Assembly (NCBI RefSeq): GCF_006345805.1
Contig: NC_043026.1
Coordinates: forward strand, 11,532,001-11,596,000
DNA length: 64,000 bases
Reading direction: 5' to 3'
Source: Octopus sinensis
Taxonomy: Eukaryota
A program made the position numbers and the translations under genes. The notes beneath the pieces are model-generated. The model had not been told where the DNA came from and did not search any database. It was given only the letters and a program-made list of their open reading frames with translations. Below, in pieces: positions 8,905 to 61,986 of this stretch (positions are counted from its first letter, which is position 1; each line of letters starts with the position of its first letter).

Positions 8905-9366
8905 CAGGTGGCACGTAAAAAGCACCCACTACACTCATGGAGTGGTTGGCGTTAGGAAGGGCATCCAGCTGTAGAAACATTGCCAGATAAGACTGGAGCC
9001 TGGTGCAGCCCTATGGCTTCCCTGATCCCCGGTCAAACCGTCCAACCCATGCTAGCATGGAAAGCGGACGTTAAACGATGATGAAGGCGTTAGGAAGGGC
9101 ATCCAGCTGTAGAAACATTGCCAGATAAGACTGGAGCCTGGTGCAGCCCTCTGGCTTCCCTGATCCCCGGTCAAACCGTCCAACCCATGCTAGCATGGAA
9201 AGCGGACGTTAAACGATGATGAAGGCGTTAGGAAGGGCATCCAGCTGTAGAAACATTGCCAGATAAGACTGGAGCCTGGTGCAGCCCTCTGGCTTCCCTG
9301 ATCCCCGGTCAAACCGTCCAACCCATGCTAGCATGGAGAACGGACGTTAAACGATGATGATGATGA
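8905..9366 (+). mobile_element. SINE family 3 with 138-bp 3' segment in three tandem copies
   Basis: Units start at 8948, 9086 and 9224. Confidence 0.85.
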
Positions 9367-11238: not shown

Positions 11239-11780
11239 TATAGATCTTAAAGGCAGGTGGAACACAATTCAGTTGTCCAGGTAAATGCTTATTTCTACAG
11301 CTTGTTTCTGTAAGAAATATATTAAAATTTATTCTGTTGTATTCTAAGTCTTCCCTGTATCTTATACTGTTGTTTCTCTACTATTCCAGGCATTGGCACC
11401 AAAGAATTTTATACAGCGGATACATCCTCAATAATTCTTGTTTTAAGGCTCAAGGAATATATTCAACAGAACAGATGTGACATTCCGTATATAAATCTAA
11501 TGCAAATTACAGGGAAAAATTTAATTTTTTTCTGAACACATTCACAGCAATAATTCTTCTGTTGATTGTCTGGAATGTGGACAAGATGACTTTACATTTG
11601 AATTAAATTGAGACAAAGTTAAAAAGGAGTTTGTACATCAATCTACATATTGCTAACGACCACAGTAGAAGAAATATTTAACAGGAATAAAATATAGAAA
11701 TCTAAATAAGATTAACACCTCAGTAGAGCATGAGAAAAGGATAAGAATGGCAGATGAATCAGTACTGATTTGCTAGTGTC

Positions 11781-14700
11781 GTGAATAAAAAGAAAAGCAA
11801 AATGTCACAACAGTCTAATATTTGTGAAAAATTATGCTCTAATGATCGAACATTAATAACACACAAATTCAATCATACAGGTGAGAAACCATATCATTGT
11901 GATACCTGTGGTAAATCATACTCTCAAAAACAATTACTAATTAAACACAACCGCAAGCATACAGGTGAGAAACCATATCATTGTGATACCTGTGATAAAT
12001 CATACTCTCAAAAACAATTACTAATTAAACACAACCGCAAGCACACAGGTGAGAAACCATATCATTGTGATACCTGTGATAAATCATACTCTCAAAAACA
12101 ATTACTAATTAAACACAACCGCAAGCACACAGGTGAGAAACCATATCATTGTGATACCTGTGATAAATCATACTCTCAAAAACAATTACTAATTAAACAC
12201 AACCGCAAGCACACAGGTGAGAAACCATATCATTGTGATACCTGTGATAAATCATACTCTCAAAAACAATTACTAATTAAACACAACCGCAAGCATACAG
12301 GTGAGAAACCATATCATTGTGATACCTGTGATAAATCATACTCTCAAAAACAATTACTAATTAAACACAACCGCAAGCATACAGGTGAGAAACCATATCA
12401 TTCTGACACCTGTGATAAATCATTCTCTCAAGAACAATTACTAATTAAACACAACCGCAAGCATACAGGTGAGAAGCCATATCATTGTGACACCTGTGAT
12501 AAATCATTCTCTCAAGAACAATTACTAATTAAACACAACCGCAAGCATACAGGTGAGAAGCCATATCATTGTGACACCTGTGATAAATCATTCTCTCAAG
12601 AACAATTACTAATTAAACACAACCGCAAGCATACAGGTGAGAAACCATATCATTCTGACACCTGTGATAAATCATTCTCTCAAGAACAATTACTAATTAA
12701 ACACAACCGCAAGCATACAGGTGAGAAACCATATCATTGTGACACCTGTGATAAATCATTCTCTCAAGAACAATTACTAATTAAACACAACCGCAAGCAT
12801 ACAGGTGAGAAACCATATCATTCTGACACCTGTGATAAATCATTCTCTCAAGAACAATTACTAATTAAACACAACCGCAAGCATACAGGTGAGAAACCAT
12901 ATCATTGTGACACCTGTGATAAATCATTCTCTCAAGAACAATTACTAATTAAACACAACCGTAAGCATACAGGTGAGAAACCATATCATTGTGACACCTG
13001 TGATAAATCATTCTCTCAAGAACAATTACTAATTAAACACAACCGTAAGCATACAGGTGAGAAACCATATCATTGTGACACCTGTGATAAATCATTCTCT
13101 CAAGAAGAATTACTAATTAAACACAACCGTAAGCATACAGGTGAGAAACCATATCATTGTGACACCTGTGATAAATCATTCTCACAAGAAGAATTACTAA
13201 TTAAACACAACCGTAAGCATACAGGTGAGAAACCATATCATTGTGACACCTGTGATAAATCATTCTCTCAAGAACAATTACTAATTAAACACAACCGTAA
13301 GCATACAGGTGAGAAACCATATCATTGTGACACCTGTGATAAATCATTCTCTCAAGAACAATTACTAATTAAACACAACCGTAAGCATACAGGTGAGAAA
13401 CCATATCATTGTGACACCTGTGATAAATCATTCTCTCAAGAACAATTACTAATTAAACACAACCGTAAGCATACAGGTGAGAAACCATATCATTGTGACA
13501 CCTGTGATAAATCATTCTCTCAAGAACAATTACTAATTAAACACAACCGTAAGCATACAGGTGAGAAACCATATCATTGTGACACCTGTGATAAATCATT
13601 CTCTCAAGAACAATTACTAATTAAACACAACCGTAAGCATACAGGTGAGAAACCATATCATTGTGACACCTGTGATAAATCATTCTCTCAAGAACAATTA
13701 CTAATTAAACACAACCGCAAGCATACAGGTGAGAAACCATATCATTCTGACACCTGTGATAAATCATTCTCTCAAGAACAATTACTAATTAAACACAACC
13801 GTAAGCATACAGGTGAGAAACCATATCATTGTGACACCTGTGATAAATCATTCTCTCAAGAACAATTACTAATTAAACACAACCGCAAGCATACAGGTGA
13901 GAAACCATATCATTCTGACACCTGTGATAAATCATTCTCTCAAGAAGAATTACTAATTAAACACAACCGCAAGCATACAGGTGAGAAACCATATCATTGT
14001 GACACCTGTGATAAATCATTCTCTCAAGAACAATTACTAATTAAACACAACCGCAAGCATACAGGTGAGAAACCATATCATTCTGACACCTGTGATAAAT
14101 CATTCTCTCAAGAAGAATTACTAATTAAACACAACCGTAAGCATACAGGTGAGAAACCATATCATTGTGACACCTGTGATAAATCATTCTCTCAAGAACA
14201 ATTACTAATTAAACACAACCGTAAGCATACAGGTGAGAAACCATATCATTGTGACACCTGTGATAAATCATTCTCTCAAGAACAATTACTAATTAAACAC
14301 AACCGTAAGCATACAGGTGAGAAACCATATCATTGTGACACCTGTGATAAATCATTCTCTCAAGAACAATTACTAATTAAACACAACCGTAAGCATACAG
14401 GTGAGAAACCATATCATTGTGACACCTGTGATAAATCATTCTCTCAAGAACAATTACTAATTAAACACAACCGTAAGCATACAGGTGAGAAACCATATCA
14501 TTGTGACACCTGTGATAAATCATTCTCTCAAGAACAATTACTAATTAAACACAACCGTAAGCATACAGGTGAGAAACCATATCATTGTGACACCTGTGAT
14601 AAATCATTCTCTCAAGAACAATTACTAATTAAACACAACTGCAAGCATACAGGTGAGAAACCATATCATTGTGACACCTGTGATAAATCATTCTCTCAAG

Positions 14701-17084
14701 AACAATTACTAATTAAACACAACTGCAAGCATACAGGTGAGAAACCATATGATTGTGACACCTGTGGTAAATCATTCTCTCAAGAACAATTACTAATTAA
14801 ACACAACCGCAAGCATACAGGTGAGAAACCATATTATTGTGATACCTGTGATAAATCATTCTCTCAAGAACAATTACTAATTAAACACAACCGTAAGCAT
14901 ACAGGTGAGAAACCATATCATTGTGATACCTGTGATAAATCATTCTCTCAAGAACAATTACTAATTAAACACAATCGCAAGCATACAGGTGAGAAACCAT
15001 ATCATTGTGATACCTGTGGTAAATCATTCTCTCAAAATCATTTCCTAATTCTACACAAGCGCAGGCATACAGGTGAGAAACCATATCGTTGTGACACCTG
15101 TAGTAAGTCATTCACTAGTATTCGAAGACTAATTGAACACACCTGTATTCCTACATGTGAGAAACTATATAATTGTGATACCTGTGGTAAATCATTCTCT
15201 CAAAAGCAATTACTAATTAAACACAGGCATAAACATAAAGTTGAGAAGCCATATGATTGTGACACCTGTGGCAAATCATTCTCTGGAAGCCAAGAGCTAA
15301 TTCATCACAAGCAAATTCATACAGAGGGGAAACTATATTTTTGTAGTGTCTGTGGTGAACTGTTCTCTGGAGTTCAAGAAATAGTTCAACACAGTCAAAC
15401 TCATACAGGAAAGACTGTGTATTATTGTGATATCTGTGGTAAATCGTTCCCTCTAATACAACAGCAAATTAAACACACACAGCGTCATAGAGTAAGGAAA
15501 CCGTGTCATTGTGATATATGTGATATGTCATTCTCCAGTGATAGAAGTTTAATTCGACACATAGAAAAACTTGCAAGCGGGAAAGAAAATTGCGATATCT
15601 GTGGTGATTCATTCTCTGGAATTCAAGAACTAATTCAACACAAACAAACTCATACAGCAGAGGAACTACATTGTGATATCTGTGGTGATTCGTTCTCTGG
15701 AATTCAAGAACTAATTCAACACAAACAAACTCATACAGCAGAGGAACTACATTGCGATATCTGTGGTGATTCGTTCTCTGGAATTCAAGAACTAATTCAA
15801 CACAAACAAACTCATACAGCAGAGGAACTACATTGCGATATCTGTGGTGATTCGTTCTCTGGAATTCAAGAACTGATTCAACACAAACAAACTCATACAG
15901 CAGAGGAACTACATTGTGATATCTGTGGTGATTCGTTCTCTGGAATTCAAGAACTAATTCAACACAAACAAACTCATACAGCAGAGGAACTACATTGTGA
16001 TATCTGTGGTGATTCGTTCTCTGGAATTCAAGAACTGATTCAACACAAACAAACTCATACAGCAGAGGAACTACATTGTGATATCTGTGGTGATTCGTTC
16101 TCTGGAATTCAAGAACTGATTCAACACAAACAAACTCATACAGCAGAGGAACTACATTGCGATATCTGTGGTGATTCGTTCTCTGGAATTCAAGAACTGA
16201 TTCAACACAAACAAACTCATACAGCAGAGGAACTACATTGTGATATCTGTGGTGATTCGTTCTCTGGAATTCAAGAACTAATTCAACACAAACAAACTCA
16301 TACAGCAGAGGAACTACATTGCGATATCTGTGGTGATTCGTTCTCTGGAATTCAAGAACTGATTCAACACAAACAAACTCATACAGCAGAGGAACTACAT
16401 TGTGATATCTGTGGTGATTCGTTCTCTGGAATTCAAGAACTGATTCAACACAAACAAACTCATACAGCAGAGGAACTACATTGTGATATCTGTGGTGATT
16501 CGTTCTCTGGAATTCAAGAACTGATTCAACACAAACAAACTCATACAGCAGAGGAACTACATTGTGATATCTGTGGTAAATCGTTCTTTCTAAAGCAGCG
16601 ATTAAATCAACACAAACAAACTCATACAGCAGAGGAACTACATTGTGATATCTGTGGTAAATCGTTCTTTCTAAAGCAGCGATTAAATCAACACAAACAA
16701 ACTCATACAGCAGAGGAACTACATTGTGATATCTGTGGTAAATCGTTCTTTCTAAAGCAGCGATTAAATCAACACAAACAAACTCATACAGCAGAGGAAC
16801 TACATTGTGATATCTGTGGTAAATCGTTCTTTCTAAAGCGGCGATTAAATCAACACAAACAAGCTCATACAGCAGAGAAACTATATCAGTGTGGTATCTG
16901 TGGTGAATCGTTTTTTCAAAGAGAGCATCGTATTCAACACAGACAACGTCATATTCAACACAGACCACGTCATATTCAACACAGACAACGTCATATTCAA
17001 CACAGACAACGTCATATTCAACACAGACAACGTCATATTCAACACAGACAACGTCATATACGTATGAATCCATATCGATATTGA
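11781..17084 (+). CDS. ZNF-B: giant C2H2 zinc-finger protein (about 62 finger units) with His-heptad tail
   Basis: 1767-codon open frame; the ORF-track start is GTG, first ATG at 11802; acceptor-like TTCCAG at 11389. Confidence 0.8.
11877..14984 (+). repeat. Coding minisatellite, 37 x 84 bp near-identical fingers
   Basis: ACAGGTGAGAA recurs every 84 bp; [28 protein letters not shown]. Confidence 0.95.
15590..16880 (+). repeat. Coding minisatellite, 16 x 81 bp fingers with TAEEL linker
   Basis: CATACAGC at 15651, 15732 ... 16866; 12 GIQELIQ + 4 FLK(Q/R)RLNQ units. Confidence 0.95.
16930..17056 (+). repeat. Coding 21-bp repeat x6 (IQHRQRH)
   Basis: ATTCAACACAGACAACGTCAT repeated. Confidence 0.9.
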
Positions 17085-18230
17085 TGCTATATCTGTGGTA
17101 AACCCTTCTCTAGATATCAACAACTGATTTATCACAACAGGAAACGAGAGAATTGTCATATATGATAAATCGTTCGATATCATTAAAAATTTTAAATATT
17201 TTTGTTGTTTTTGTAAAATCTCAGAAAATAATTAAAAAAATTAACATTTTTTGTCAAATTATTTTGTTATATTTGTCTATCTATCCAACTGTAAACATTT
17301 TAAATATTTCACTAATTTTTTGTTATAACTTGGCAAAAGGGTACAAATTTTGCCAAAAATAGCCAAATTTGTTCCCCCAGTCTTCTTTATCCACAATATC
17401 TGTAGTAAATCATTCTAAAAACACCAGCTAATTAAACATGCGTGTGTTCAGACAGGCAAGGAACCATATGATATCTGTGGTAAATCATTGTCTTGAAATC
17501 AATAACTAATTAAGCACATCTTTATTCATACAGGGAACGAAGTATATTATTGATATCTGTGGTAACACATTCTCTCAAAATTAATAACTATTCATACTGG
17601 TGGGAGACCATATCATTAGGATATCTATGTTAAATCATTCTCTGGAAGTGGTAACTTAACTAAACACAAACATATAGGCGCAGGAGTGGCCGTGTGGTAA
17701 GTAGCTTGTTTACCAACCACATGGTTCCGGGTTCAGTCCCACTGCGTGGCACTTTGGGCGAGTGTCTTCTACTATAGCCTTGGGCCGGCCAAAGCCTTGT
17801 GAGTGGATTTGGTAGACGGAAACTGAAAGAAGCCCGTCGTATATATGTATATATATATATATGCATGTGTTTGTCCCCCTAGCATTGCTTGACAACTGAT
17901 GCTGGTGTGTTTATGTCCCCGTTACTTAGTGGTTCGGCAAAAGAGGCCGACAAAATAAGTACTGCGCTTACAAAAGAATAAGTCCCGGGGTCGAGTTGCT
18001 CGATGAAAAGGCGGTGCTCCAGCATGGCCGCAGTCAAATGACTGAAACAAGTAAAAGAGTAAAGAGTATATACTTAACTATACAGAGAAACCATGTCACT
18101 GTATATTGTAAATCATTCTCTGAGAGCGTTCAGTTAACTAGATAGGTACTTATTCACACAGGTGAGAAATCACGTCACTGTGAAATCGATGGCAAATCAT
18201 TTCCTCAAAGTCAACACCTAACTGTCCATT
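17085..18230 (+). pseudogene. Decayed finger repeats 3' of ZNF-B, interrupted by a SINE
   Basis: ATCTGTGGTAAATCATT / AAACCAT motifs with stops and indels. Confidence 0.6.
17677..18068 (+). mobile_element. SINE family 1
   Basis: Full head-CORE-tail match; inserted after CACAAACATAT. Confidence 0.85.
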
Positions 18231-22092: not shown

Positions 22093-23346
22093 ATGAAGAA
22101 GTTTAAATATAAACTACAGTTTAAAAGTATAGATTTGCATAGCAACATGAACAAAGAGAAAGGGAAAACATCACACCATTGTGATATTTGTGGGAAATTA
22201 TTCTCTGAAAGTCGTAAATTAATGTACCACAAATATATTCATACAAGAGAGAAATCATATCATTGTGATATCTGTGGCAAATCATTCTTTGGAACTGTTA
22301 GCTTAACAATACACAAACGTAGTCATACAGGAGAGAAGCCATATCGCTGTGATATATGTGACAAATGCTTCTCTACAAATAGTAGCTTAACTAGACACAA
22401 ACTTAATCATACAGGAGAGAAACCGTATCATTGTGACATTTGTGGTAAATCATTTTCTCAAGGTCATCGCCTAACTGAACACAGACGAAGTCATACAGGT
22501 GAGGAGACTTATCACTGTGATATCTGTGGCAGATCATTCTTACAAAATTCTAACTTATCTAGGCACAAACGTATTCACACAGGAGAGAAACCATATCAGT
22601 GTGATATCTGTGGTGAATCATTCTCTGAAAATGGTGGATTGATTTCTCATAAGCATATTCACACAGGAGAGAAACCATTTTGCTGTAATATTTGTGGCAA
22701 ATCATTCTCTCAGAGGGGTACCCTAACTCGTCACAAACGTATTCATACAGGAATGAAACCATATTGTGACATTTCTGGTAAACCCTTCTCTGCAGGTAGC
22801 AGCTTTATTCAACTCAAACAAGGTCATACAAGTGAGAAACATAAACCATACCAGTGTGATATCTGCGGCAAATCATTCTCTGTAAAAAGTTACTTGGTGA
22901 AACACAAACAAATTCATAGAGGAGAGATATCATATTGTTGTGATATCTGTGGTAAATCATTCCCTGGAAGTGGTAACTTAAAGACACACAAGCACATGCA
23001 TACAGGAGAGAAGCCGTATCACTGTGACATCTGTGGTAAATCATTCGCTGGAAGTAGCAACTTAATTAAACACAAACGTATTCATACAGGAGAGAAACCA
23101 TATCAGTGTGATATCTGTGGCAAATCATTCGCTCGAAGTTATCACCTAACTAAACACAAACGAAGTCATACAGGTGAGAAACCATATCATTGTGACACCT
23201 GTGGCAAATCATTCTCTGAAAGTTGGAACTTAACAATGCACATACGTATTCACACAGGTGATAAACCTTATCACTGCGATATTTGTGGCAAATCATTCCC
23301 CCAAAGTGGTCAGTTAATCAAGCACAAACTCGTTCACACAGGATAG
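22093..23346 (+). CDS. ZNF-C: C2H2 zinc-finger protein, 13 intact + 1 degenerate finger
   Basis: 417-aa ORF with a real ATG at 22093; conserved MNKEKG Met at 22147. Confidence 0.9.
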
Positions 23347-26990: not shown

Positions 26991-27785
26991 CGTAAGTTAA
27001 CTAGACAGGAACGTATCCACACAGGTGAGAGACCTTATCAGTGTGATATCTGTGGAAAATCATTCTGTCAGAATGGGGAATTGTTCTCACACAGGCATAT
27101 TCATACAGGAGAGAAACCATATCACTGTGATATCTGTGGTAAATCATTCTCTCAGAATGGTGAATTAACTGTTCACATGTATATCCACACTGGGCAGAAA
27201 CCATACCAGTGTGATATCTGCGGTAAATCATTCTCTTGTAACCCTCGCTTAACTGTACACAAACGTATTCATACAGGAGAAAAGCCATATCATTGTGATA
27301 TTTGTGGTAAATCATTCTCACAAAATGAACATTTGACTGTACACGAACAAAGTCATACAGGAGAAAAACCATATCACTGTGATATTTGTGGGAAAGCATT
27401 CTCTGTAAATAGTAGGTTAAAAACGCACAAACTTATTCACACAGGTGAGAAACCATATAGTTGTGATATCTGTGGCAAATCATTCTCTTTAAGGGGCAAT
27501 TTAACTACACACAAGCGTATTCACACAGGAGAGAAACCATATTGTTGTGATATCTGTGGCAAATCATTTCCTCGAACCGATGGTTTGACTGTCCACAAAT
27601 ACAGTCATACAGGTGAGAGACCATATTGTTGTGATATCTGTGGTAAATCATTTTCTCGAAATCACAACCTGACCGACCACAAACAGATTCATACAGGAGA
27701 GAAACCATATCGCTGTGATATCTGTGGCAAATCATTCCTTCGAAATCGAGATTTAACTATTCACATACGTGTTCACACAGAATAG
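26991..27785 (+). pseudogene. ZNF-D: 5'-truncated orphan C2H2 array (9 fingers + partial)
   Basis: Finger homology begins mid-helix (RKLTRQERIH) at 26991; no ATG before the first fingers (ORF-track start is TTG); no conserved leader. Confidence 0.7.
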
Positions 27786-27856
27786 AGACCTTATCAGTGT
27801 GATATCTATGGTAAATACTTCTCTGTATTAAGTTCCTTAATTAATCACAAACATAT

Positions 27857-28520
<664 letters not shown>

Positions 28521-43587: not shown

Positions 43588-45015
43588 CTATCTCGTGTGA
43601 ATATATTTGTGTTTAGTCAAGCGGCTCTTTACATAGAAAGATTTGCCACAGATGTCACAATGAAATGGTTTTTCTCCAGTGTGCATGAGTTTGTGAAGAG
43701 TTACTTCACCACGTCGAAGGAATGCCTTGCCACAGATATTACAGCAATATGGTCTTTCTCCCGTATGTGTACGTTTGTGGTCAAGCAGATGTTGGTTTTG
43801 ATTGAATGATCTACCACAGATTTCACAGTGATAAGGTTTCTCCCCTGTGTGAATACGTTTGTGAACAGTTACACTGCTGCTTTCAGAGAATGACTTACCA
43901 CAAATATCACAGAAATAACGTTTCACTCCTGTGTGAACACGTTTGTGTGTCGCAAAGTTACCACTTCCAGTGAATGATTTACCGCAAACCTCACAATGAT
44001 ATGGCTTCTCTCCTGTATGAATTCGTTTGTGTTCAGTTAGGTGATATTTATCAAAATATGATTTACCACAGACATCGCAATGATATAGCTTCTCACCTGT
44101 ATGTATACGTTTGTGTTGAGTTAAGTTATGATTAAGAGAGAATGATTTACCACAGATATCGCAGAGATACGGTTTCTTTCCGGTGCAAATATTCTTGTGT
44201 GACAGAAGTTCACTATTTTCAGAGAATGATTTACCACAGATCTCACAGTGATATGGCTTCTCTTCTGTATGAATACGTTTGTGCTTAGTTAAGAAATGAT
44301 TGAAAGAAAATGAATGCCCACAAACATCACAGAGATATGGTCTCTCTCCTGTATGGATAATACGTTTGTGTTCAGTCAGGTGATGATTTTGAGAGAATGA
44401 TTTACCACAGATATCACAGTGATATGGCTTCTCTCCTGTATGACTTCGTATGTGTTTAGTTAGATGTTGATTTCGTAAGAATGATCTACCACAGATATCA
44501 CACTGATGCGGTTTTTCTCCTGAATGAATACGTTTGTGTCTAGCTAAGTAACTACTTTCAGAGAATGATTTACCACAGATATTACAATAAAATGGTTTCT
44601 CTTCTGTCTGAAAACATTTATGTTTATTTAAATAATAATTGAGAGGGTAAGATTTCCCACAAATATCACAGTGATACGGTCTCTCTCCAGTATGAATAAC
44701 ACGTTTGTGTTCTATTAGATTTTGATTTTGAGAGAATGATCTACCACAGATATCACAGTGATGTGGTTTCTCTCCTCTATGGATTATACGTTTGTGTCTT
44801 CTGAAGCTAGACTCATGAACGAATGATTTCCCACAAACATCACAGTTAAACGGCTTCTCTCCAGTATGAATGTATTTGTGTGTTACTAATGTACGATTGT
44901 CACAGAGAAATTTCCCACAGATATCACAGTGGTGTAATTTTTTCCTTTTCTCTTTATCCATGCCTCTATGCAAATCAATACTTTTCAATTGTATTTTATA
45001 TCTAAACTTATTCAC
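43588..45015 (-). CDS. ZNF-F: C2H2 zinc-finger protein, 16 finger units
   Basis: The ORF-track start is GTG; likely ATG at 44961 (MDKEK); decayed fingers continue to about 43440. Confidence 0.9.
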
Positions 45016-45544
45016 ACATCATTCAACTTCCATTGTTTATTTTCTCTCTTGACAATATAGAGATGTGTATCTTCTTTATGTTTCTATACTTCATTCCTAT
45101 TAAATATTTCTTCTATTGTGATTTTTGTCAATACATGGACTGAATTGTAAACTCCTTTTTAAATCTGTCCAAGTGTAATTCATATGCAAAGACGTCTTGT
45201 TCACATTCCAGACAATCAACAAAACAATTATTGCAATCAATCTCAGTATACAAAAAATATTTGCTTGTCGTTTGGTATAGATTTGTATAACATCTTTCTT
45301 GAGAGTTTAAGATGTAAAAAAAATTTTTTCGATGCCGATTGTTATTCTGAAATAGTAGAAAAACAACAGTATAAGATACAAGGGTTACTGAAAATACAAG
45401 AGTGGAAACTTTTGTATATTTTTTATAGAAGTAAACTGTAGAACTAAACATTAACCTGAACTGTTTCCCACTAGTTTTAAGATCTATATGATAGTGTGTT
45501 TTTATATATATATATATTTATTTACGGTGTTTATATATGTTTAT

Positions 45545-49946: not shown

Positions 49947-51985
49947 TGATTGATTGATTGATTGATTGATTGATTCTAGTTTCAGCTTATGAGCTGTGGC
50001 CATGCTGGGGCACCGCCATTTGGTGTTGCTACTTGGTTTCACTTCATGGAGGCTTTCTAGCAACTGCTATTTGGTGCATGAGAGAGTTCGATGCAGCTGC
50101 CCTCATCTGCCCCTCCTGCCGTGAAGTTGGTTCATCTGGGACACCTGACAGGAAGAGATCCAGCTTCATTTTAAAGACATCTGTATCCACCCCATGCAGG
50201 TCTCTCAGGTTCTTCGGGAGGATATTGAAGAGCTGTGGGCCTCGGAAGCCCAGGCTATCACAGAATCTTGTCCTACATCTCGCGTCATCACTCATGTAAA
50301 TACCTAGGTCACGCACTGATTGTGCCTCTGGGATTGCTATTCCTCCGGGTCCTGTGTATTCATTGGGTATTGCATTTAGTTTTGCATGCTGATAGTATAG
50401 AGCTTGAAACTTTTCAGCATTGAACTGCATGCTATTCTTTTCGGCCCACTTGTATATTTCGTCCAGCTCATATTGCAGGTGCCTAGTGTCTTCAGGGTTC
50501 TGTATTGCCTGTGAAACTTTTGTATCATCTGCATAACTTGTGATCGTGGCTCTCTGCGTGGCTGAGGGCATGTCTGAGAGGGCCATTATGAACAGTAGTG
50601 GTCCCAGAACAGTGCCCTGCGGAACACCGCTCACTATTTGCGTGTTAATGGAAGTGGCCCCATTGGCCACTACCACCTAACTTCTATCTTTCAGAAAGTC
50701 ATGAAGCCATTCTCCCAGTTTTCCAACTATGTTGAGATCACGCAGTTTGTGACATATCATTCCATGATCGACTTTATCAAAGGCCTTTGCAAAGTCGAGA
50801 TATATCACTTCCACATTTGAGTGGTTGAGCAGCCGTTTCAGCACCCAGTCATAGTGTTGTAGGAGCTGAGTTAAACAGCTTCTCCCTGGTCGGAAACCAT
50901 GTTGGGTGTCGGGCAGCAAGTCATTCTCTTCAAGGAAGGTGATCAGCTTCCTTCTGACTATTCGTTCCATGACCTTGCTGATGTGTGAGGTCAGAGAGAT
51001 AGGTCTATAGTTCTTGGCTTCCGCTCTGCTACCTCCTTTATGAATGGGGCATATTTTACCTTCCTTCAGTTTTCTTGGAAGTTTGCCAGCTGCAAGGAAG
51101 CTCTGAAAGAGGAACTGCAGTGGTCTTGCTAGGACTCTCTTACATGCTTTTAGGAGGATTGCCGGGAATCCATCGGGGCCAGTAGCTGAGTCTGTTTTCA
51201 TTTCATCTATAGCCTTGATTACATCGTCTTCCTTTATATCGATGTAATCTATCGTCGCCGCCTCTGATTTTATATCTACAGTGGTAAAAAAGTCAGTTGG
51301 ATTGGTGATTTGGAGATGTCCAAGGGGTGGAGTGAAAACACTCTTGAATTGCTCATTCAGTATTTCACTTACCCTCATTGGTTTTCCTGTAAGTGTGCCA
51401 TCCTTTTCGAGGAGTGGCCCTATTCTACAGTGCACCGTAGCTGTTTCTTTGGCATACCTGTAGAAAGCTCTGGGGTTAGATTTTATGTTGTCTATAGCCC
51501 AGGCTTCTTTGTCTGCTCTTTCCTTTTCATGAGACATTTTTCGATTTCCAACAGTTTTATTTTTAGGCGGGACTTTTCACTGCTTTCAATCTGTTTGTTT
51601 AGGCGATTTGAAAATTTTGTACGCCGTCTCATTAAAATTTTCCTCTCTCTGGGGATTTTGTTCTTGTGTACAGTGGCCTTTCTCTCTGGGACACATTTGT
51701 AGCATATGGCTTGCATTACAGACATGAATTGTTGAAGTTTCACGTCGATGTCTGGCGAGGAGAGACATTTAGGCCAGTTTTGTTTGAGGATCTCTTTCTC
51801 AATTTGTTTCCAGTTTGCTTTATGGTAGTTCAAGATTCTGAGGGTTTCTTGTAGGCTGCATGTCCGTGCTCTCTTTTGGCCCGTACATGGTCAGCTCTAT
51901 CATGTTGTGATCCGAGAGTAGTGTCGGTGTCACTTTCACATTATGGATGAGATCCATGTCATTTGTGAAGCAGAGATCCAATATA
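49947..51985 (-). mobile_element. 5'-truncated, disrupted CR1/L2-like LINE (endonuclease end + RT + 3'UTR, (AATC)n tail)
   Basis: LDLCFTN...SDHN; ATGPDG; YRPISLTS; QHGFRPGRSC; YLDFAKAFDKV; SGVPQGTVLGPLLF; YADD; frameshift, in-frame TAG at 50677 and an internal deletion. Confidence 0.9.
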
Positions 51986-52319: not shown

Positions 52320-52963
52320 GTCGGTGGCACGTAAAAGACACCATTCGAGCATGATCGTTACCAGCATCACCTTACTGGCACCTGTGCCGGTGGCATTTGT
52401 AAAAGATTTGAGCAAGGTCATTGCCAGTACCGCCCGACTGGCCCCGTGCCAGTGGCACGTAAAAGCACCCACTACACTCTCGGAGTGGTTGGTGTTAGGA
52501 AGGGCATCCAGCTGTAGAAACTCTGTCAGATCAAGATTGAAGCCTGATGCAGCCATCTGGTTTGCCAGTCCTCAGTCAAATCGTCCAAGCCATGCTAGCA
52601 TGGAAAGCGGACATTAAATGATGATGATGAGGCCAGATCAAGATTGAAGCCTGGTGCAGCCATCTGGTTTGCCAGCCCTCAGTCATACGTCCAACCCATG
52701 CTAGCATGGAAAGCAGACGTTACATGATGATGATGATGATGAGGCCAGATCAAGATTGAAGCCTGGTGCAGCCATCTGGTTCGCCAGCCCTGTCATACAT
52801 CCAACCCATGCTGGCATGGAAAGAGGACGTTAAACTATGATGATGATGATGAGGCCAGATCAAGATTGAAGCCTGGTGCAGCCATCTGGTTCGCCAGCCC
52901 TCAGTCAAATCGTCCAACCCATGCTAGCATGGAAAGCAGACGTTAAACGATGATGATGATGAT
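52320..52963 (+). mobile_element. SINE family 3 with about 110-bp 3' end in four tandem copies
   Basis: CAGATCAAGATTGAAGCCTG...GATGATGATGA x4, abutting the ZNF-G stop. Confidence 0.85.
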
Positions 52964-52970
52964 GTGGTTA

Positions 52971-54563
52971 CTATCCCGTGTGGGTACGTTTGTGTTTAGT
53001 CAAAGTGCTCTTTACATAGAAAGATTTGCCACAGATGTCACAATGATATGGTTTCTCTCCTGTATGCATACGTTTGTGAATAATTATTTCACCATGTCGA
53101 AGGAATGATTTGCCACAGATATTACAGCAATGTGGTCTTTCTCCTGTATGTGTACGTTTGTGGTCAATTAGATGCTGATTTTGTGAGAATGAGTTGCCAC
53201 AGATGTCACAGTGATACGGTTTCTCTCCTGTGTGACTACGTTTGTGATAAGTGATGCCACTCCTAACCGCGAATGATTTACCACAAATATCACAACAATA
53301 AGGTTTCTCACCTGTGTGAATACGCAGGTGTATCTTTAAGTGACTACTTCCAGTGAATGATTTACCGCAAACCTCACAGTGATATGGTTTCTCTCCTGTA
53401 TGAATCCGTCTGTGTTCGGTTAGGTTAAGACTATCAGAGTATGATTTACCACAGATATCACACTTATATGGTTTTTCTCCTGTATGTACACGTCTGTGTT
53501 TAATTAAGCTGCCACTTACAGTGAATGATTTCCCACAAATATCACAGCAATAAGGTTTCTCTCCTGTGTGAATACGTGAGTGTCTCATGAAGCTACCACG
53601 TCCAGTAAATGATTTACCACAATCACCACAATGATATGGTTTCTCACCTGTATGAATGCGTTTGTGTTCAGTTAGGTGATAATTATCAAAGTACGATTTA
53701 CCACAGATATCACAATGATATGGCTTCTCACCTGTATGTATACGTTTATGCTTATTTAAGACATAATCAATAGAGAATGATTTACCACAGATATCACAGT
53801 GATATGGCTTTTCTTCTGTGCAAATATTCTTGTGTGAAATAAGTTCACTATTTTCAGAGAATGATTTATCACAGATGTTACAATAAAATGGCTTGTCTCC
53901 TGTGTGAATACGTTTGTGTTTAGTTAAGTGACGATTGAAAGAGAATGATTTACCACAGACATCACAGTGATATGGCTTCTCTCCTGTATGAATAACACGT
54001 TTGTGTTCAGTTAGATGTTGATTTTGAGAGAATGATCTACCACAGATATCACAGTGATATGGCTTCTCTCCTGTATGACTTCGAATATGATTAATTAGAT
54101 GCTGATTTTGAAGGAATGATTTGCCACAGATATTACAGTGATATGGTTTTTCTCCTGTATGAATACGCTTGTGTGTAGTTAAGTTACAACTTTCAAAGAA
54201 TGATTTACCACAGATATTACAACTAAATGGTTTCTGTTCCGTATGAATATATTTGTGTTTATTTAAGTAATGATTTTCAGAGAATGATTCACCACAGATA
54301 TCACAGTGATATGGTTTCTCTCCTCTATGAACAATACGTGTATGTCTGCTGAGACTAGACTTATGAAGGAATGATTTACCGCAGACATCACAGTTATGTG
54401 GTTTCTCTCCTGTATGAGTGTATTTGTGTGTTGTCAATTTATGACTTTCAGAGAAAAATTTCCCACAGATATCACAGTGGTGTGATGCTTTACTTTTCTC
54501 TTTATCCATGCCTCTATGCAAATCAATACTTTTCAATTGTATTTTATATCTAAACTTATTCAC
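52971..54563 (-). CDS. ZNF-G: C2H2 zinc-finger protein, 18 finger units; tandem paralog of F
   Basis: The ORF-track start is GTG; likely ATG at 54509; leader nearly identical to F. Confidence 0.9.
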   Translation of the reverse strand: MNKFRYKIQLKSIDLHRGMDKEKSKASHHCDICGKFFSESHKLTTHKYTHTGEKPHNCDVCGKSFLHKSSLSRHTRIVHRGEKPYHCDICGESFSENHYLNKHKYIHTEQKPFSCNICGKSFFESCNLTTHKRIHTGEKPYHCNICGKSFLQNQHLINHIRSHTGEKPYHCDICGRSFSQNQHLTEHKRVIHTGEKPYHCDVCGKSFSFNRHLTKHKRIHTGDKPFYCNICDKSFSENSELISHKNICTEEKPYHCDICGKSFSIDYVLNKHKRIHTGEKPYHCDICGKSYFDNYHLTEHKRIHTGEKPYHCGDCGKSFTGRGSFMRHSRIHTGEKPYCCDICGKSFTVSGSLIKHRRVHTGEKPYKCDICGKSYSDSLNLTEHRRIHTGEKPYHCEVCGKSFTGSSHLKIHLRIHTGEKPYCCDICGKSFAVRSGITYHKRSHTGEKPYHCDICGNSFSQNQHLIDHKRTHTGERPHCCNICGKSFLRHGEIIIHKRMHTGEKPYHCDICGKSFYVKSTLTKHKRTHTG

Positions 54564-56013
54564 ACATCATTCAACTTCCATTGTTTATTTTCTCTCTTGA
54601 CAATATAGAGATGTGTATCTTCTTTATGTTTCTATACTTCATTCCTATTAAATATTTCTTGTGAGTTTTGTCAATATATGGACTGAATTGTAAACTCCTT
54701 TTTTAATCTGTCCAAGTGTAATTCATATGCAAAGACGTCTTGTTTACATTCCAGACAGTCAACAAAAGAATTATTGCTATCAGTCTCAGTATACGAAAAA
54801 TATTTGCTTGTCGTTTGGTATAGATTTGTATAACTTCTTCCTTGAGAGTTTAAGATGTAAGAAAAACTTTTCGATGCCAATTGTTATTCTGAAATAGTAG
54901 AAAAACAACAGTATAAGATACAAGGGTTACTTAAAATAAATTATATGCAAACACCCTCCCTGCATATGAAAAAGACAGTTATTGGAATCTTTATTTATTT
55001 ATGTAATTTGTATTAATTTTTAAAATAAAAATGCCTACATTAAGAAAAGCACTTTCAACATTAAAAAAAATGTAAATTCTTAATGATATGCAATAAAAGA
55101 AAACTATGCATGAACCTCAGATGTTATACATGAAAGGTGAACACCATAAAATAAGCATTAATCCGGAGATATTGAATTCACCTCAAGAGACGTCATTGAT
55201 TGGTTGAAATTGCCGAAATGCAAGAAATTAAAGAACAAATAGCTTATAAACTACAGAATTTTCTCAATAAAGCCAAAAGAAAAAGATGTTTTATAAACAC
55301 ATTCTACCAGTATACGAAGTTTAAAAGTGATTAGTTGCAAAGAATTTATTTTTAAAATGTGCAGGTCAAAGCGAAAAGATCCAATAATTTTTTAAACAAA
55401 GTAAATAAAACACAAAGTAAGGATCGACTAGTCACGACTAGCTAGTGCGGATTCGAGTGTACGCGAACCGGGACCACTCTTCTGAAGTAGTACCTTATTT
55501 TCCATATTCTTAATCTCCATATTATTCCACGTAGATTGAAAAAAAAAATTTGGAAGTAAGTTAAAATTAAAAAATTTGTGGTGGGGAGGGGGGGGATTAA
55601 ACATTTTGAAAACATGGTCTTTGGTATTATTCGGAATCTCCGTCATCGAAAACATAGGAATCTGCTTCAAAGAGAAAAAGGTGGGTAAAAGGCGGTTTTT
55701 CCGTACAGGTGTACTTGTAAACATTAACCAAAATTTTTGTTGAAGGGAGTAAAGAAGTTTCGATTTGTTTCCTCATAACTTTATGAAAACTGGATATATT
55801 TTTTTTAACAAAGTTTTCTACAAATCTGTGTCTGATAGTAAAAAATGACGATTACAGAATTTGATGTGAAAACAAAATTTGGGATGGGGGTCACAAACCT
55901 CGATTTTGTTTCTTCATACGTTTTCCAGAAGTATGTTAATTATCACCACCCTTATTTTTCGTCCACATACCAAATTCCAAGAATACCGTAATGTACAATA
56001 TTTCAAAGGTTTT

Positions 56014-60397: not shown

Positions 60398-61986
60398 CTA
60401 TCCTGTGTGAACGAGTTTGTGCTTGATTAACTGACCACTTTGGGGGAATGATTTGCCACAAATATCGCAGTGATAAGGTTTATCACCTGTGTGAATACGT
60501 ATGTGCATTGTTAAGTTCCAACTTTCAGAGAATGATTTGCCACAGGTGTCACAATGATATGGTTTCTCACCTGTATGACTTCGTTTGTGTTTAGTTAGGT
60601 GATAACTTTGAGCGAATGATTTGCCACAGATATCACAATGATATGGCTTTTCTCCTGTGTGTATACGTTTGTGTTTATTTAAGTTATAGTTATGAGAGAA
60701 TGGTTTACCACAGATATCACACTGATATGGTTTCTCTCCTGTATGAACACGTATGTGCTTAATTAAGCTGCTATTTGCAGAGAATGATTTTCCACAAATA
60801 TCACAACAATATGATTGCTCTCCTGTATGAATTTGTTTGTGTTTAATGAAGTAACTATTAACAGAGAATGATTTGCCACAGATATCACAGTGATATCCTT
60901 TCCTTCCTGTATGAATACGTCTGTGTTCAGTTAGATGATGATTTTGAGGGAATGACTTACCACAGATATCACACTGATATGGTTTCTCTCCTGTATGAAT
61001 ACGTTTGTGTTTAATTAAGTTGCTACTTCCAGCGAATGATTTACCACAGATGTCACAGTGATACGGCTTCTCTCCTGTATGCATGTGCTTGTGTGTCTTT
61101 AAGTTACCACTTCCAGAGAATGATCTGCCACAGATATCACACTGATATGGTTTCTCTCCTGTGTGAATACGTTTGTGTTTCACCAAGGAACTTTTTACAG
61201 AGAATGATTTGCCGCAGATATCACACTGATATGGTTTATGTTTCTCACTTGTATGACCTTGTTTGAGTTGAATAAAGCTGCTACCTGCAGAGAAGGGTTT
61301 ACCAGAAATGTCACAATATGGTTTCATTCCTGTATGAATACGTTTGTGACGAGTTAGGGTACCCTCTGAGAGAATGATTTGCCACAAATATTACAGCAAA
61401 ATGGTTTCTCTCCTGTGTGAATATGCTTATGAGAAATCAATCCACCGTTTTGAGAGAATGATCTGCCACAGATATCACACTGATATGGTTTCTCTCCTGT
61501 GTGAATACGTTTGTGCCTAGATAAGTTATTACTTCGTAAGAACGATCTGCCACAGATATCACAATGACATGATTTCTCTCCTGTGTGACTTCGTTTGTGT
61601 TCAGTTAGGTGATGACCTTGAGAAAATGATTTACCACAAATGTCACACTGATACGGTTTCTCTCCTGTATGATTAAGTTTGTGTTTTGTTAAGTTACCAC
61701 TTGCAGAGAAGGATTTACCACAAATATCACAGTGATATGGCTTCTCTCCTGTATGACTACGCTTGTGTATTCTTAAGCTACTATTTTTAAAGAATGATTT
61801 GCCACAGATATCACAATGATATGATTTCTCGCTTGTATGAATATATTTGTGTTTCATTAATTTATGACTTTCAGAGAAGAATTTCCCACAAACATCACAA
61901 TGGTGTGATGTTTTCCCTTTCTCTTTGTTCATGTTACTATGCAAACCAATTCTTTTAAACCGTGTTTTATATTTAAACTTATTCAC
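60398..61986 (-). pseudogene. ZNF-I: inverted paralog of ZNF-C, 18 finger units, 1-nt frameshift (or assembly error)
   Basis: ORFs 61354-61986 and 60398-61387; GGG at 61362-4 (minus) versus GGGG at 22715-8 in C. Confidence 0.8.

Follow-up and report, generated by a model that had tools for sequence, protein, structure and literature searches.

What keeps dozens of consecutive zinc fingers in a single protein nearly identical: selection for one repeated DNA-reading specificity, or tandem amplification so recent that the copies have scarcely diverged? The question is raised by an open reading frame (ORF) on the forward strand of a 64,000-nucleotide stretch of the Octopus sinensis genome (assembly GCF_006345805.1, contig NC_043026.1, positions 11,532,001 to 11,596,000), which is referred to below as the window and whose own numbering is used throughout. 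The gene to which this ORF belongs is here called the focal gene, and its features are listed in Table 1. With moderate confidence, we favor the view that it is a young member of a lineage-specific cluster of C2H2 zinc finger (ZNF) genes, in which a minisatellite-like exon was amplified in frame, recently, and under weak constraint at best.

Tandem Repeats Finder reported an 84-bp period from position 11870 to 15284, with 40.7 copies and 96% matches. The core of this repeat, array A, consists of 37 units that differ from the consensus at 0 to 4 of 84 bases. Units 35 to 37, at the edge of the array, are 2 to 3 sites off the consensus, and the following units 38 to 41 differ from it at 10 to 23 sites. 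An earlier note on this DNA had described 37 near-identical 84-bp finger units as a coding minisatellite, and this description is borne out; the span given there (11877-14984) has the same length of 3,108 bp (37 x 84), but it is shifted by 15 nt relative to the finger register. We found 17 distinct unit sequences, 12 nucleotide-identical units, and 13 variable sites, with a mean pairwise difference of 3.1%. This homogeneity is far from chance and above the local norm, as judged against the neighboring ZNF arrays in the window. The earlier proposal that the homogeneity, and not the finger count, is the unusual property agrees with a broader comparison. Among 379 large poly-ZNF proteins returned by our searches (a non-random set, in which annotation and short-read assembly disfavor such arrays), the longest run of consecutive fingers that are at least 90% identical was 5, and the corresponding run in the focal gene is 12 under the strict ligand pattern and 31 if units with a Ser at the first Cys position are allowed.

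The recognition helix reads S-Q-[E/K]-[Q/E]-L-L-I-K-H in 37 of the 37 array A units, so the previously noted combination of Gln at -1, Leu at +3, and Lys at +6 is present without exception. Position +1 is Lys in units 1 to 6 and Glu in the remaining units, and position +2 is Glu in four units. That variation is restricted to +1 and +2 is thus correct for the helix itself, but not for the finger as a whole. Outside the helix, the core Phe is replaced by Tyr in units 1 to 6, either Asp or Gly follows the Cys pair, Arg is replaced by Cys in units 33 and 34 (so that these two units gain a Cys), and His is replaced by Asp and by Tyr in units 35 and 36. The first Cys ligand (Cys1) is replaced by Ser (TGT>TCT) in units 7, 10, 12, 23, 25, and 27. 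None of the 13 variable sites falls within the codons for -1, +3, and +6, and in this respect the pattern is the opposite of that of PRDM9, as had been pointed out. The canonical linker TGEKPY is present in all 37 units, and array A has a single open frame among the six. The linker codons ACA GGT GAG (unit nucleotides 71-79) also form a splice-donor-like AG|GTGAG in every unit. Cryptic in-frame splicing inside array A is conceivable; as a peculiarity of array A, the motif was rejected, given that the linkers of the neighboring genes carry 12 copies of it.

The variants are not scattered along array A. When each distinct unit is given a letter, the array reads abbbccdefgfghhijhhhhhfkflfmhhhhhnnopq, in which variants occur in blocks and dimers, and the resulting likeness of neighboring units was matched by none of 10,000 shuffles. 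The four-gamete test fails at 8 site pairs. Ser units and intact units alternate as 168-bp dimers, and therefore the dead Ser finger was itself re-amplified several times. A Ser unit scores 22.0 bits against the Pfam zf-C2H2 profile, below the cut-off of 25.2 bits, and the Ser units break up the intact array A fingers into runs of 6, 2, 1, 10, 1, 1, and 10.

Array A is only one part of the focal ORF, which comprises 62 finger-like units; of these, 53 (31 of 37 in array A) retain a full set of four zinc ligands at C-X2-C-X12-H-X3-H spacing. The seven fingers that follow array A (units 38 to 44) are diverged and not repeated. Unit 40 retains the A-type helix QKQLLIK, unit 41 is similar to a unit of the next array, and on the basis of their sequences these fingers appear to be older relatives of those that were amplified; the second His is missing in units 39 and 44. 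Array B comes next, with units of 27 residues. Its units 2 to 12 are identical at the protein level, its first unit starts with Asn and not His, and its three recurrent variable sites are all synonymous. The array B linker is the non-canonical, acidic TAEELH, which has 6 residues and is one residue shorter than the TGEKP(Y/F) type. Array B' shares the framework of array B completely (52 of 52 nt identical), and the 13 differences between the two are crowded into the helix-coding nucleotides 19-47 (29 nt), a confinement with a probability of about 2e-6 if the differences were evenly spread. This packing indicates conversion tracts. Hence B and B' represent a homogenized framework with a swapped helix, a pattern that array A does not show. 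A donor of the B' helix was not found elsewhere in the window at 6 mismatches or fewer. Finally, the 21-bp repeat, which derives from the last finger's H-X3-H end, shows that the locus also amplifies segments other than whole fingers. Three A units in tandem score 56 bits with PF00096 and 78 bits with PF13465, three B units score 61.7 bits with PF13912, and the nearest solved structures by sequence in a PDB comparison are ZFP568, Aart, and PRDM9. On sequence grounds, then, both unit types are classical (Krüppel-type) C2H2 fingers.

Table 1. Features of the focal gene and its flanks, in window coordinates
Feature	Position	Strand	Description	Basis
5' leader	11560-11801	+	Shares homology with the leaders of six ZNF paralogues of the window	Alignment
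Focal ORF	11802 (first ATG) to TGA at 17084; or from GTG at 11781	+	About 1,760 codons	
Degenerate first finger	11802-11891	+	Cys1 lost relative to the paralogues' HHCDICGK...; no Pfam match	
Array A	11892-14999	+	37 x 84 bp (finger register), one C2H2 finger per unit	
Zone with the six Cys1>Ser units	12396-14159	+	Unit-type strings fgfg and fkflfm	
TCT codons of the Cys1>Ser units	12402, 12654, 12822, 13746, 13914, 14082	+		Sequence
Units 38 to 44	15000-15587	+	Seven diverged, non-repeated fingers	Sequence
Array B	15588-16559	+	12 x 81 bp, 27-aa unit	
Array B'	16560-16883	+	4 x 81 bp	
Last finger and stop	16884-17084	+	Stop codon at 17082-17084	
21-bp array	16929-17054	+	HIQHRQR x 6, derived from the last finger's H-X3-H end	
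Decayed continuation	17085-17686	+	Finger remnants past the stop	

From this anatomy and variant structure, we infer that recombination out of register (by unequal exchange between sister chromatids or alleles) or replication slippage may have amplified three segments of the gene, with short-tract gene conversion acting alongside. In this view, 37 copies arose from a single 84-bp finger, 12 + 4 copies from an 81-bp finger, and 6 copies from a 21-bp piece of the last helix. Unequal exchange or slippage combined with conversion is indicated by the occurrence of three in-frame arrays of different period in one ORF, and also by the order of the variants in blocks and dimers, the eight four-gamete failures, and the B/B' mosaic. 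The homogeneous core and diverged edges of the array further indicate that such events were repeated. Unequal exchange and gene conversion are, moreover, well established in minisatellites and in finger arrays such as that of PRDM9 (PMC2779102; PMC3890296). Since the periods of 84, 81, and 21 bp are all divisible by three and no stop occurs in the A unit in its own frame, the reading frame would stay open even without selection. We judge the amplification to be recent because the A units differ from each other by 3.1%, as compared with 20 to 33% mismatches (67 to 80% matches) in the finger arrays of the neighboring ZNF genes.

Assembly errors are also common in 3.1-kb arrays of about 97% identity, and mis-assembly or consensus polishing of a shorter array may have inflated the copy number, the homogeneity, or both. 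The same concern is raised by our protein searches and exact look-ups, which found no second assembly, read set, transcript, or annotated protein for the focal locus. We nevertheless regard an artefact of this kind as quite improbable: the 13 variable sites lie in ordered blocks and dimers with recombinant combinations that collapse or polishing would blur, three arrays of different period are all in frame, the edge gradient is that of a genuine array, and the 5.3 kb of the focal ORF contain neither Ns nor frame errors. Short-read polishing may have altered individual unit variants, but the ordered structure argues against a gross artefact.

If the array grew recently by such a process, the next issue is whether selection has acted on it. 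The invariant contact residues are no evidence of a selected monotone specificity. The probability that 13 variable sites all miss the nine contact-codon bases is (75/84)^13 = 0.23, and the invariance of these codons is therefore uninformative on selection. The open frame within the arrays is equally uninformative: for about 18 mutational events, each with a 4 to 6% chance of creating a stop, the probability of observing no stop is about 0.4. The uniform Gln/Leu/Lys contacts would accordingly be a by-product of recent amplification and not a selected specificity.

More telling are the lesions that the gene carries, several of which point to relaxed constraint. Six A units have lost Cys1, a dead type that was re-amplified, and a Cys was gained in two others; a ligand is also missing in the first finger and in units 39 and 44; Leu at +3 is absent from 102 neighboring fingers (0/102), and the B linkers are non-canonical. 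The flanks of the ORF argue in the same direction, as the leader has suffered a deletion, the start codon has changed from ATG to GTG, and decayed finger remnants follow the stop. Specifically, 37 bp are deleted from the leader between positions 11759 and 11760, an in-frame TGA stands at 11766-11768 just upstream of the focal ORF, and the Met codon that is kept in six of six paralogues is GTG at 11781-11783. At the other end, the stop codon occupies the expected start of the next finger, and right behind it, in frame, lies the finger remnant CYICGKPFSRYQQLIYHNRKRENCHI* (the asterisk marks a stop). About 230 bp of AT-rich sequence separate this remnant from further ones at 17395-17686, which contain at least 5 stops or frameshifts. 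These are cut by a short interspersed nuclear element (SINE) at 17672-18071, after which finger-like sequence resumes up to about 18224.

The two flanks can be compared with other parts of the window. Several paralogue leaders (e.g., 44960-45080 and 54510-54630) have an ORF that opens at GTG after an in-frame TGA (MEVE*), and the leader of the gene at 1039-2061 is read through from an upstream ATG. The N-terminal leader of the family seems to be poorly conserved, and the true family start is probably the Met just ahead of the first finger. As for the 3' flank, 17469-18197 is 73% identical to 27632-28352, a segment that comprises the 3' end of the ZNF ORF at 27081-27785 and a SINE; this alignment suggests that the SINE insertion is older than a segmental duplication.

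Several observations weigh against a gene that is drifting freely. Seven codons past the lost Met codon, the focal ORF has an ATG with an A at -3. The unit variants comprise 9 nonsynonymous and 9 synonymous changes (8/6 in array A, 1/3 in array B), when 72 to 80% nonsynonymous changes would be expected neutrally; the one-sided P value of this deficit ranges from 0.005 to 0.045 with the transition/transversion ratio, the numbers are small, and event counting is approximate in a recombining array. In addition, the 12 B units are identical in protein sequence save for the first residue of the first unit, even though three synonymous sites vary. There is also no stop or frameshift in 5.3 kb, including 588 bp of old, non-repeated fingers, and the downstream remnants are full of stops. 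Because the old fingers are unbroken while the remnants decayed, the ORF must have been protected for some time. Given the mild nonsynonymous deficit, some constraint is possible. Taking both sides together, we propose that until fairly recently the focal gene was probably functional, and that its present constraint appears weak at best.

What could the encoded protein bind? If translated from the ATG at 11802, the gene would yield a protein of 1,760 residues that could bind DNA through short runs of intact fingers. In the recognition code, Lys at +6 favors a 5' G and Gln at -1 a 3' A; the middle base is read poorly or ambiguously by Leu at +3, with a weak preference for T/C. The predicted preference of array A would be a periodic, poorly defined G-(T/C)-A. 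The sole triplet microsatellites in the window are (GAT)n, at 13 sites of 12 to 18 bp, and no triplet repeat that fits G-(T/C)-A was found there. The earlier note had suggested (TGA)n/(GAT)n as a target, which is not supported by this comparison. Neither (GAT)n nor (ATC)n corresponds to G-(T/C)-A in any frame, and with only short tracts available and no frame that fits the code-predicted triplet, (GAT)n was rejected as a specific candidate. For engineered monotone finger chains directed at CAG repeats, an extended linker is required after each pair of fingers (PMC5013590). Since all array A linkers are canonical and none is extended, contiguous reading of 111 bp by the 37 fingers is unlikely, and it would seem that only short sub-runs of A fingers could engage DNA.

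These predictions bear directly on the selective answer to our opening question, namely, that selection keeps the fingers homogeneous for length-dependent, multivalent binding of a 3-bp-periodic satellite or microsatellite (or repeat RNA), with the dead fingers as spacers and copy number tuning affinity. The deficit of nonsynonymous unit variants and the protein-identical B units (save for the first residue of unit 1), whose three recurrent variable sites are synonymous, would both be accounted for in this way, as would a frame that is intact when set against the decayed downstream remnants. Moreover, binding of triplet repeats is known from engineered monotone arrays (PMC5013590), repeats are predicted targets of octopus ZNFs (PMC10547256), and the near-identical run is far above that of any of the 379 comparison proteins. 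Selection for homogeneity is harder to reconcile with the amplification of six ligand-dead units, with linkers that are all canonical and not extended as in long engineered arrays, and with a +3 Leu that reads bases poorly and is not used by the neighboring fingers. Likewise, the window has no G-(T/C)-A triplet repeat and only short (GAT)n tracts, the leader and start codon are damaged, and the amplification of a 21-bp non-finger segment in the same gene implies generic repeat instability. We therefore consider such selection unlikely. A natural monotone polydactyl protein with selected homogeneity, which binds 3-bp-periodic satellite or microsatellite DNA or RNA in a multivalent manner, has dead fingers as spacers, and exists as copy-number alleles that form a tunable series, is to us a shade less likely again. 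If true, the monotone protein would be a natural counterpart of the engineered repeat-binding finger chains, and proof that the protein is made and binds a triplet repeat would make it the first monotone finger chain in nature to read a repeat, an outcome that we judge unlikely. No comparable monotone array from nature turned up in our literature searches.

Recent amplification in a weakly constrained gene, the explanation that we prefer, can also be viewed against the surrounding cluster. At least 9 finger-only ZNF ORFs occupy both strands of the window, and six of them have the leader in common with the focal gene. Multi-copy SINEs and a broken reverse-transcriptase (RT) element lie among these ORFs. 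The neighboring ZNF genes have 8 to 18 diverse fingers, of which adjacent ones are 52 to 67% identical in amino acid sequence, and they show no near-identical run; the focal gene has 62 units with an adjacent identity of 91 to 93%. The ZNF gene at 22093-23346 has a paralogue on the reverse strand at 60398-61986, which is split by a frameshift near ...CGKSFSQR into two overlapping ORFs of 210 and 329 aa and represents either a pseudogene or a sequence error. Also on the reverse strand, at 50044-51537, adjacent ORFs of 286 and 210 aa each match the PF00078 reverse transcriptase and constitute the RT of one retrotransposon, broken mid-way, between two ZNF genes. At least 9 SINE copies that are 80 to 93% identical occur across the window, and SINE 3' parts ending in (GAT)n are tandemly repeated at 8948-9360 and 52527-52964 (138 bp x 3 and 110 bp x 4, respectively). 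Rfam and tRNA scans of the window returned no matches.

Relatives of the array were also sought outside the window. Protein homology searches with the whole protein, with a collapsed version of 435 aa, and with the non-repeated middle in a representative library gave identities of at most 54%, no cephalopod match, and no relative of the array; these searches were swamped by giant vertebrate and insect ZNFs, since scores sum over fingers. A finger-free query (the tail, the paralogue leaders, and the RT N-terminus) returned nothing at E<=1, and exact look-ups of the focal ORF, six neighbor ORFs, the RT ORF, and a reverse-strand tail ORF found none on record. The long natural poly-ZNF proteins that were the top database matches (Xfin-type, ZNF850-like) resemble the focal protein in having tens of tandem C2H2 fingers, but their fingers are diverse and their identity to it does not exceed the value given above.

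A close known parallel is PRDM9, whose fingers are likewise encoded in a single exon by 84-bp tandem units of very high nucleotide identity, and which undergoes unequal exchange and gene conversion (PMC2779102; PMC3890296). In Peromyscus leucopus, PRDM9 even has five nucleotide-identical fingers in a run (PMC2779102). This likeness raises the possibility of a larger gene that has effector exons upstream and uses the array as its DNA-reading exon, with alleles that differ in finger content to functional effect. The resemblance of an 84-bp coding minisatellite to that of PRDM9 (PMC3890296; PMC2779102), the homogenized framework and swapped helix of B and B', and the presence of PRDM9 among the nearest solved structures by sequence all speak for such a module. 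We find it highly improbable, given that array A is invariant at -1, +3, and +6, that the N-terminus has 30 residues, no domain, and an in-frame stop ahead of it, and that every paralogue is a plain finger-only ORF with the same short leader. No KRAB, SSXRD, or PR-SET domain was found in the focal ORF, whose 30-aa N-terminus has no Pfam match, a result that applies to the ORF only, as distant upstream exons are possible. PRDM9 also differs in that it varies at -1, +3, and +6 under positive selection, which array A never does, and in that it has roughly 8 to 20 fingers together with KRAB, SSXRD, and SET domains, as opposed to 37 + 16 amplified units, some of them ligand-dead, and no effector domain in the focal ORF. 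Within the focal gene, only the B/B' pair shows helix-focused differences of the PRDM9 type. PRDM9, the well-studied coding finger minisatellite, is shaped by diversifying selection, and the focal locus shows the same recombination without helix diversification. The unit variants of the locus could thus serve to measure how fast intragenic unequal exchange and gene conversion proceed.

Other known systems share single aspects of the locus. Like the focal array, mouse MMSAT4 is finger-coding DNA that is repetitive enough to be listed as a satellite, and it recombines within ZNF clusters (PMC5363842); it differs in being a three-finger consensus spread over hundreds of genes, whereas the focal array is based on one finger in one ORF. 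The engineered ZFxHunt and ZF-KOX1 proteins repeat one recognition helix in consecutive fingers, as array A does with its Gln/Leu/Lys contacts. Those chains read a CAG triplet repeat, and longer chains prefer longer repeats (PMC5013590). In contrast to array A, with its TGEKPY linkers only, unsuited +3 Leu, and six dead fingers, ZFxHunt has engineered extended linkers at every second finger. The setting itself is familiar from octopod ZNF clusters, which have been described from octopus genomes as dense groups of finger-only ZNF ORFs with SINEs and an RT element (PMC9795677; PMC12513265). The focal gene stands apart from its neighbors in this cluster by the number and likeness of its units. 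We suggest that the locus is a natural example for asking how new poly-ZNF architectures arise and die in fast-expanding clusters, and how often arrays of this kind are overlooked by annotation and short-read assemblies. In comparison with these systems, the focal gene is of a known kind, i.e., a finger-coding minisatellite in a fast-evolving ZNF cluster, and it is the scale of its array that is unusual.

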